DNA of 64,000 bases from Camelus dromedarius (Eukaryota), in assembly GCF_036321535.1 (NCBI RefSeq), contig NC_087438.1:99014001-99078000 (forward strand). Direction: 5' to 3'. Each line of letters begins with the position of its first letter. The stretch's first letter is position 1. Shown one piece after another: positions 19,701 through 22,700 of this stretch. A program made the translations under genes and the position numbers. The notes under the pieces were generated by a model. That model searched no databases, was not told where the DNA came from, and saw only the letters and a program-made list of their open reading frames with translations.

Positions 19701-22700
19701 ATGTTTTATGCAGTAGATGACCTATAACACGGATTATGCTAAAGAAAATATGTGAGGAGAAATCCTGAGATTGACCACAAGGGCATGAAGGAGGGCAGAT
19801 ATTTCCTTAGGGTTAAACAATGGACGGTCCTGGTAAGCCAGATCATCCATTAACAGAACTTTGTTCTGGCATGAAAGCGTGCGGTTTAACCCAGGGGAAA
19901 TCTTTGCTATCTCCAGATGTCCCGGAGGCAGTAACAGGATAGACTTAGAAAATTCGCATACCCTGAGGAAGGTGATTGTTCCTAGAAGGGATAGGCCTGA
20001 AATTAATCAGTTAACCAGCAAGCAGAACTTAGTGCTTATTTCATGGAATGTCTAAAGCCCCACTTCTTTGATCACATTTTTTTCTGAGCTGTATACTCCT
20101 AATAAGTATGATGTCAACCAGGTTTTCAGCACTCTAGATCCACAAGATCTTGAGTCCCCTGGTTCCATCTTTGCTCTTTACTTTGTCTCTTTGTTTCTTA
20201 AGTCTTGGGTCGCCTGTCTTCAGACATGGTCCCGAGCTGCGCTGGACGCAGCATGGTAGGTATGGTGGTCACTATATTTTCATGGGTGTACACTGGAATG
20301 TAAGCAAGGGTCATGGCTTCTCTTTGTTGTCCACTTTCTTCCCCACAGGGCCGAACTCTGAGTCTACTTCCTATGACATCAGCTCAACATTAACGTGGTC
20401 ATGTCTGACCAGTCTCTTGCTTTCTAAAACACTCTGATGACTTCCCTCTACTCCAGAGGTAAAAACCCCAATTCATTACAGGGTTGCTTGCTTTGTAAAC
20501 CCTACCTATCTCTTCAGCCTCCATTCAGATCACTCTTCTCTTCAGATTCTATAGTCGGCCTTTTTTCTGTTCCTCAAATGAGTCATATTCTGTCCTTAGC
20601 ATGTGTTGCCCCTACTGCCCACGACATTCCTCCCCTCATCCTCCATCCTCCCAGCTACCTTTCACCTAATTACTTCCTACTTTCTTCAGACCTCAGCTCA
20701 GTCTTTATTACTTCGTCTAGGAAACCTCCACTGACCGGCCCACTCCCAGGCTAGATAATTCTCCCATGTATATGCTCTCATAGTCTGTCATGTACCTCTC
20801 CTTCAGAGGACTCAGCACAACTGCAATATTAAAACTGTGCTATTGATGTTTTTCATTGCATCCCCAGCACTTAGCAAAGGGCCTGGCCTAGATTAAGTAA
20901 CCAATAAATATTTGTTGAATAAAGAAATGAGTAAATGATGATTCATTGACAAGCATCCTCCCCGTTCCTATCTTCCCACTCCTGCCACAAGATCTCACTC
21001 AAGTATTCTCATTGAAATGCCTGGCATCAGGTGCCTGACATCAAAGGTCCCAGTCCTCCCCTCACCAGTCATCGCCCACGTTNNNNNNNNNNNNNNNNNN
21101 NNNNNNNNNNNNNNNNNNNNNNNNNNNNNNNNNNNNNNNNNNNNNNNNNNNNNNNNNNNNNNNNNNNNNNNNNNNNNNNNNNNNNNNNNNNNNNNNNNNN
21201 NNNNNNNNNNNNNNNNNNNNNNACAAGGTGAACCCAGGCAGGGTCAGTCCCACTCCCTGGGCTGAGGCCACTCACACTGAACCCAGCCCTGGGGACTGTC
21301 CAAAACCACACACTGTCCCTTGCCCTCCAATCCTTGTTATTCTATGAGACAAATGTCAGTGAAGAGAGACTCTGATTAGCCTGATGGTTTACTATGATCA
21401 AGCCCCCTAAAGACCACTGGGCTTGCCTTTTCCTTCCCACCTCCAGCTCAGCCTTTCCTATCTTCTCAAACCTTAACACCCTTCCACCTGCCATGTTCCC
21501 TGGATCTCCTATTCCTGATTCTCTCCATACTCATTTCCCCTGGGCTCTGATTCCATCCTCTCTCTCCTCTGAGTTCTTAATTTTGGAGTCAAATAATGTG
21601 GGACATATGACAGACTTCTAATTAAAACCCAAGATGATCATGTACTAATCCAGAGATTTATTATCTTTTGAGGGGTTCACATACTTCTTTAGAAACTGGA
21701 CAAGAATCAGATTTTCTTCTCCTCCCAGAAAATGCTCGTAGGCACACACTGGCAAACATTTGCAAAGGAGTCAGAGATTCATGCACTAACATCACCTCAG
21801 TCTTTTCTATAACCAGTTCACCTGTGTATGCCTCAGCACAAGCAGATGACACCCATTCACACTGTTGACTAATTCCCCTTGCAATGCATAAGGGCCGAGC
21901 AGTATGTTATAATCACATATCACAGCTATAAACTCCAAGCTGGGGACAGATAACATGTGTATATCCCAGAGATGGAGGGATGGGTAGTGACTAAATAGAA
22001 CTGTTGGTGAGTATTCTGGGTTGAAAAGGGGAATACCCAGCACATCTCCTACTGTCCTCCACACACATACACATTTACACACAGGACTTCAGAGTCCTCT
22101 CTGGAGCTCTAGCTCCTTGAGGGTGGAGAGAAGTGGTGGAGGAGAAGGGGTGGGAATGAGGGTAAACCTCACATCCAATAACACAGTCCCTTGCCCTTCC
22201 CTGAGGTCACAGAACTGGCCTATGATGCTGGGAAGGGAAACACTTTCTGTCTTCAAACCAGCCCCACTCACCCTAACCCTAGGCCATGGATTGGTCCACT
22301 TGAGGTCAAAGGGTGGCAAACCTAAAGTGGAAAAAATAGCTCCCATTAAGTCAGTGGGTGCACCTACCAACACTCTGCATATGTGGGTGCTCCCGGTTCC
22401 TTCTACTCAGCCTCTCCCCCCACCACTCTAGGGGTGGGTCGCTCTTGGTGCCTTCACTGCAGCCTACCCATCTCCAGGGCCGCAGCTCGCCCCCACCCTC
22501 AAACCCCAGCAGAAGCCGTGAGACTTACGATCATCTTCTTATAGAGACCGTAGTGCAGGACCAGACTATGGGTCAATGCCAAGCGATGGGGCTTCATAGG
22601 GTGCCCAGCCCCTGGGGGTGGGAGAAGAGAGTTCGTCAGATCCCATCCCTGGAGTTGAAGCCGCAGCCTCGAAACCTCCACGTCCCGAAACCCCTCGCGT

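Follow-up and report, generated by a model that had tools for sequence, protein, structure and literature searches.

A cloverleaf-like fold in an intron of dromedary HDAC3 is very probably inherited from the long terminal repeat of an endogenous retrovirus

Introduction

Structured RNA elements that act in cis have been described in retroviruses and their endogenous relatives. The Rec-responsive element (RcRE) of HERV-K, an endogenous retrovirus of humans, is a structured RNA element in the U3 region of the long terminal repeats (LTRs), including intronic solo LTRs, which are often antisense; it spans about 430 nt by the published coordinates and needs the viral Rec protein (PMC6916052). Simple class II retroelements carry structured export elements near the 3′ end of their RNA, as in the RNA transport element (RTE) of intracisternal A-particles and the constitutive transport element (CTE) of simian type D retroviruses (PMC1363727), and both CTE and RTE-type elements are in use among class II elements (PMC1363727; PMC11379458). 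Palindromic relics of DNA transposons provide a second point of reference. The microRNA precursor mmu-mir-763 corresponds to the repeat Eulor5A (PMC3495686), mir-763 and mir-1641 derive from DNA repeats (PMC4233971), and Eulor5/6 have been classed as ancient Crypton transposons (PMC5753468). Here we analyse a 101-nt four-way junction, or cloverleaf, at positions 19801-19901 of a stretch of 64,000 nucleotides from Camelus dromedarius (assembly GCF_036321535.1, contig NC_087438.1, positions 99,014,001 to 99,078,000 of the forward strand). This whole stretch, here called the window, contains the HDAC3 gene, and all positions given are those of the window. The analysis indicates that the cloverleaf is very probably U3 sequence inherited by a solo LTR relic, with no function specific to this locus.

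Results

Contigs from four public sequencing runs, representing two organisms coded A and B, were aligned to positions 19301-20400 at 80% likeness. X6 and X11 were DNA runs (about 2,000 million letters), X18 was an RNA run, and X1 (97 million letters) was guessed to be of the RNA kind. The DNA runs yielded 624 (X6) and 694 (X11) contigs that matched at 80-99% likeness. In both runs the summed depth was 1,200-17,000 in every bin between 19560 and 20262 and zero elsewhere within 19301-20400. The bins that hold the cloverleaf (19782-19929) were covered at a depth of 3,500-11,000, comparable to the remaining repeat. Contigs passed into unrelated sequence at 19564, 19578/19579 and 20253/20254, with 40 and 39 contigs of the two DNA runs doing so at 20253. 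Since many dispersed contigs share the sequence together with the same two boundaries, the cloverleaf does not belong to a single locus. As judged from these contigs, it does not stand alone but lies inside a dispersed, high-copy repeat some 690 bp long, of which the genome would hold about a thousand copies or more. An earlier note on this DNA had presented the cloverleaf as the strongest candidate for something undescribed, which would mean a conserved RNA of one locus antisense to HDAC3. This is not supported, with the same sequence present in hundreds of distinct contigs per run. No second copy lies within the 64-kb window.

A retroviral LTR is recognised by TG..CA ends with a short inverted repeat and by a target-site duplication of 4-6 bp, and inspection of the repeat revealed all of these features. 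The repeat extends over 690 bp (19564-20253), as delimited by a TGCTG start (19564-19568), a CAGCA end (20249-20253) and the contig boundaries, and the two termini form a 5-bp terminal inverted repeat. Target-site duplications, TGGTAG on both sides and identical at 6/6 positions, stand directly before the first base of the LTR (19558-19563) and directly after its last base (20254-20259). Because no internal viral sequence lies between the two hexamers, the LTR is a solo LTR. Its left end consists of four tandem 15-bp units (19564-19623, + strand; Tandem Repeats Finder, period 15, 4.0 copies, 86% matches), and the shift of register that these units allow accounts for the alternative left edges, 19564 and 19579, among the copies. 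Tandem repeats at the end of an LTR are typical of U3. An AATAAG hexamer on the + strand (20101-20106), preceded by TATACT (20092-20097, +), lies at 78% of the LTR length and is followed by T/G-rich sequence to the end. At position 20106 this copy has G, where other copies read A in 5248 of 5340 depth units (X6), so that most of them carry AATAAA, the canonical poly(A) signal.

With the signals in this order, the sense strand of the LTR would probably be the + strand. Whichever strand is read, a poly(A)-type hexamer follows downstream of the cloverleaf, from which we infer that the cloverleaf belongs to U3, at roughly positions 238-338 of the LTR. Class II (ERVK-like) elements typically have target duplications of 6 bp, and this feature taken by itself hints weakly at a class II affinity. 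Three points weigh against these assignments. An ATTAAA on the - strand (19702-19697) holds a relative position similar to that of AATAAG, for which reason the + orientation is put forward as probable rather than settled. No provirus with this LTR was seen, and neither class nor orientation is fixed by a primer-binding site or a polypurine tract. With a standard repeat library, no ERVK was found in camel genomes (PMC6675863), which speaks against the class II call; ERV2-class LTR elements identified de novo in camelids number 410-679 per genome (PMC8605555).

We then consider the fold itself. For the + strand RNA of 19801-19901, RNAfold returned the outer stem and the three hairpins that the earlier note had drawn, with a minimum free energy of -44.1 kcal/mol and z = -6.06 relative to dinucleotide shuffles (mean -23.3, standard deviation 3.4); none of the 200 shuffles folded as well. 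The - strand RNA reached -37.7 kcal/mol (z = -6.30, likewise against dinucleotide shuffles), and single-stranded DNA parameters gave -23.1 kcal/mol (z = -5.13). In the + strand structure, an outer stem of 18 positions (19801-19818 with 19884-19901) encloses hairpin 1 (19819-19851; -12.6 kcal/mol, z = -2.9), whose loop includes position 19834, hairpin 2 (19854-19868; z = -3.7), which is a perfect 6-bp dyad CAGAAC/GTTCTG, and hairpin 3 (19869-19882), in which the wobble T19872-G19879 is specific to the HDAC3-intron copy. All three hairpins are short perfect dyads such as dimeric factors bind. Hairpin 2 was considered as a steroid-receptor site, as it contains half-sites of the TGTTCT type; their spacing is not the canonical three bases, and we make no such claim.

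An inverted-repeat search placed the cloverleaf within a palindromic module at 19795-19907 (+ strand), made up of inverted arms of 24 nt each (19795-19818 and 19884-19907), 79% complementary in the HDAC3-intron copy, and a centre of 65 nt. The centre alone folds at -24.8 kcal/mol on the + strand (z = -4.4) and at -20.3 kcal/mol on the - strand (z = -3.0). A 220-nt fold around the cloverleaf gave z = -7.5, and a permissive alignment appeared to lengthen the arms. A longer palindrome of 210-390 nt was rejected, as its parts outside about 19795-19907 were at chance level against shuffles. The z of the 220-nt fold thus stems from the core, because the outer parts align no better than shuffled sequence, and the real object is a module of about 113 nt, beyond which pairing is that of chance. 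In line with the earlier note, the cloverleaf does not resemble a tRNA: neither ARAGORN nor the Rfam tRNA model made a call at 19801-19901, and the 18-bp outer stem differs from a tRNA acceptor stem. The Rfam scan, ribozymes included, gave nothing at gathering score.

The next question is whether the module has been kept or is decaying. As differences we counted the places at which more than 80% of the X6 depth differs from this copy, among the 40 best-supported places listed. The 547 nt of the LTR outside the module hold 28 such places, and the 113-nt module holds 2. Position 19879 is G in this copy, and among the other copies A makes up 5086 of 5147 depth units in X6 and 5082 of 5130 in X11. 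With the G, a wobble takes the place of the T19872-A pair in hairpin 3, and a CpG arises that the others lack. At 19902 most other copies read A, pairing with T19800, and the C of this copy gives a T/C mismatch. Both changes weaken pairs and neither is compensated, which fits neutral decay; 19834, the one further variable place listed for the module, lies in the loop of hairpin 1. Compared with this copy, contigs that span the module show 10-13% difference (25/193, 24/236 and 16/122), and contigs over other parts of the LTR 8-16%. From these alignments, the source of the LTR family seems to have had a cleaner structure, and the copies, including this one, look as if they were drifting. On the other side of this reading stands the low number of changes in the module, 2 against 5.8 expected at the rate of the flanks, a difference that is not significant (Poisson p for 2 or fewer, about 0.07); mild constraint on the module, or correction between its arms, may be responsible.

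The same comparison alters the earlier description of the element in two respects. The CpGs were said to be retained, but the one at 19878-19879 is new in this copy, nearly all others having A at 19879. The + strand was credited with four G-U pairs, of which three remain once the copy-specific change at 19879 is set aside. The earlier note had also named neutral decay as part of a repeat as the outcome that would speak against its proposal, and the pattern found is largely of this kind, a high-copy LTR with two uncompensated changes that damage pairs. A separate observation was made in organism B (run X11), where in one LTR copy 108 letters that could not be aligned at 80% replace the 110 letters of 19795-19904, between 19794 and 19905. 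The module may there be inverted or have diverged strongly. There is a comparable replacement at 19941-20080.

These data bear directly on the idea of a host RNA, according to which the cloverleaf is a conserved structured RNA or cruciform specific to this locus, antisense to HDAC3 and with a function for the host. The strong fold would agree with it. The RNA-type runs also hold contigs nearly identical to the locus (X1, 2 differences over 19784-19976), but intronic pre-mRNA explains these equally well, and contigs cannot reveal whether an RNA is discrete, where it ends or which strand it comes from. We regard such an RNA as highly improbable, given that each run holds hundreds of distinct contigs of the repeat family to which the sequence belongs, that the two well-supported module changes of this copy weaken pairs, and that Rfam gave no hit.

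Inherited LTR sequence could still have had a role in the virus. The module could be a working cis-acting RNA element in U3, and so at the 3′ end of all viral transcripts, which would recruit an export, stability or 3′-end factor in the way of the CTE, RTE or RcRE elements of class II retroviruses, the solo copies being inactive or incidental carriers. Several features point this way. The + strand, which is probably the sense strand of the LTR, gives the stronger fold (z of the centre, -4.4 versus -3.0); without the copy-specific pair there are three G-U pairs on the + strand and one on the - strand; the letters of other copies at 19879 and 19902 complete the structure further; changes in the module are slightly rarer than in the flanks; and the HERV-K RcRE sets a precedent for a place in U3 (PMC6916052). 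An RNA role is favoured only mildly by the slightly better + strand fold and by G-U pairs outnumbering A-C pairs. Near-perfect Watson-Crick dyads are equally expected from inverted duplication at the DNA level or from sites for dimeric proteins, copies spanning the module are as diverged as other parts of the LTR, and the orientation of the LTR is itself unsettled. No Rfam family matches the module, and its Rfam scans contained no match of the CTE, RTE or RcRE type, although which of these elements Rfam holds was not checked. On balance we consider a working RNA element of this kind unlikely.

The palindrome itself could have another origin. It might be a miniature inverted-repeat transposable element (MITE), possibly related to Eulor5, Eulor6, mir-763 or mir-1641, that landed in the progenitor LTR or was captured by it. 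At a permissive threshold, Rfam aligned the arms of the module to the arms of mir-763 (19.4 bits) and mir-1641 (18.2 bits), two families for which published work gives a link to DNA repeats and, for mir-763, to Eulor5A, with Eulor5/6 in turn linked to Crypton. These arm-only matches are not significant (mir-763, E = 0.92, gathering score 100; mir-1641, E = 2, gathering score 104), and the alignments skip the whole centre. A search with a two-arm pattern found only the cloverleaf itself within the window, nothing in viral contigs, and a single metagenome contig, L001 (Ga0065710_10041540); copies of the repeat were absent from the viral contigs with a 27-mer as well, and the metagenome scan likewise gave no copy. 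L001 contains a 97-nt palindrome (1229-1325) with a plain hairpin centre, for which Rfam mir-1641 gave hits on the two strands at E = 7e-5 and 0.0016. A significant mir-1641-type repeat was thus retrieved through the arm motif, but the pattern used had itself been derived from the arms, and L001 aligns with the camel element at the pattern positions only. The 15-nt arm motif common to the two palindromes is within chance for a two-arm search. As an aside, the repeat of L001, a member of the family connected with Eulor5 in published work, implies vertebrate-type DNA inside a metagenome assembly.

Other properties of the palindrome also disagree with a transposon of this type. Its edges lack a target duplication, its pairing fades into the LTR with no clear edge, and the high copy number of the repeat that carries the cloverleaf contrasts with the Eulor families, which have few copies and deep conservation across bony vertebrates. 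We therefore did not file the module under Eulor, the hits being non-significant, the centre unrelated, and both copy number and context wrong; a MITE origin is in our estimate very unlikely. A piggyBac element, suggested by TTAA next to CCC/GGG, was rejected, as the TTAA lies toward the centre of the palindrome and not at its outer ends. The suggestion in the earlier note of a mobile-element relic was right as to kind, since the cloverleaf sits in an LTR relic, and wrong as to class, which is not that of ancient, low-copy, palindromic DNA transposons such as Eulor, UCON or Crypton.

With regard to the host gene, HDAC3 lies on the - strand, with exon 1 at about 22720-22770, exon 2 (HPMKPHR...LVLHYGL) at about 22540-22610, the exon encoding FEFCSRY at about 18100-18180 (the FEFCSRY codons at 18151-18171), and later exons down to about 13600. 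Exon 3 was not seen between exon 2 and the FEFCSRY exon, and an N run (21083-21222) stands at its expected place. As the N run occupies the expected exon 3 site, the position assigned to the cloverleaf in the earlier note, intron 3, is consistent with the exon map. Fixed intronic LTRs are usually antisense to their host gene, and the LTR with the cloverleaf probably lies antisense to HDAC3 in this intron. Unique sequence to the right of the LTR (20263-20400) was covered in run X1 at a depth of 4.9 and the left side (19301-19559) was uncovered, and the RNA run X18 showed thin cover on both sides. This flanking cover could come from HDAC3 pre-mRNA or from read-out of the LTR; the contigs give no strand.

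The remaining features of the window are of a different nature. The region 22600-24200, around HDAC3 exons 1-2, is G+C-rich with long overlapping open reading frames on both strands, and looks like a CpG-island promoter. An SH3-like open reading frame on the - strand (29506-29859) suggests the next gene. A tRNA-Ala(AGC) on the - strand (56576-56647), called by Rfam (60.7 bits) and ARAGORN, may be a real gene. Two weak tRNA-like matches of about 31 bits each (42514-42585, - strand; 55286-55357, + strand) may be heads of tRNA-derived short interspersed elements or decayed genes. Besides the N run at the HDAC3 exon 3 site (21083-21222), runs of N occur at 34439-34578, 53543-53690 and 59325-59472, all four being 140-148 bases long; the one at the exon 3 site looks deliberately masked.

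Discussion

On the basis of these results, we propose that the cloverleaf in HDAC3 intron 3 came with a retrovirus. Recombination between the two LTRs of an endogenous retrovirus would have left the solo LTR behind. The nested palindromes would have arisen once, in the U3 of a progenitor virus, and would then have been multiplied about a thousand times or more through retrotransposition or reinfection. Spread by copying from a progenitor virus would account for a fold of such cleanness in intronic DNA. At the HDAC3 locus, the cloverleaf would have no demonstrated job and would be decaying like the remaining LTR.

What the structure did in the ancestral virus can be framed as three possibilities, to each of which we give about one third of the weight. 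By analogy with the HERV-K RcRE in U3, it may have been a 3′-untranslated RNA element serving export, stability or 3′-end use. It may have been a cluster of dyad-symmetric protein-binding sites in the enhancer. Or it may have had no role and be a by-product of strand-switching during reverse transcription. A more specific proposal is that the four-way junction would be a compact functional U3 element of 100 nt belonging to a camelid endogenous retrovirus family, with an architecture unlike that of CTE, RTE or RcRE; we hold this to be improbable. If it were true, a U3 element scattered in introns could affect the host transcripts that carry it in the sense orientation.

The significance of this work is mainly that of a correction. 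A striking RNA structure that seemed confined to one locus belongs to a retroviral LTR present in many copies, and for this reason the cloverleaf is not a candidate for a host RNA gene or for a conserved regulatory element of HDAC3. An intronic solo LTR is ordinary; for retrovirology, so clean a four-way junction within U3 is of modest interest as a curiosity.

Among known systems, the element as a whole is closest to the solo LTRs of endogenous retroviruses, with which it shares TG..CA ends, a 6-bp duplication, U3 tandem repeats, a late poly(A)-type hexamer, an intronic position and a probable antisense orientation. It differs in that no internal viral sequence, primer-binding site or polypurine tract was seen with the 690-bp LTR. 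The module is palindromic as are Eulor5A/5B and Eulor6, and has in common with them an arm motif of 15-16 nt (ATTTCCTNAGGRTTAA and its complement), but it is set apart from these families by a non-significant match (E = 0.92) and by its centre, copy number, age and LTR context. The RTE and the CTE sit upstream of the 3′ LTR, whereas the module lies inside the LTR, and there is no sequence match to either. The RTE, reportedly described by Smulevitch and colleagues in 2005, is said to form a long stem with several internal stem-loops, an architecture similar to that of the module. The nearest parallel in position is the RcRE of HERV-K(HML-2) (LTR5Hs), which is likewise a folded segment of U3 carried by scattered intronic solo LTRs. 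The module, at 101-113 nt, differs from the RcRE in size and has no sequence similarity to it, so that the resemblance is one of place and not of membership.

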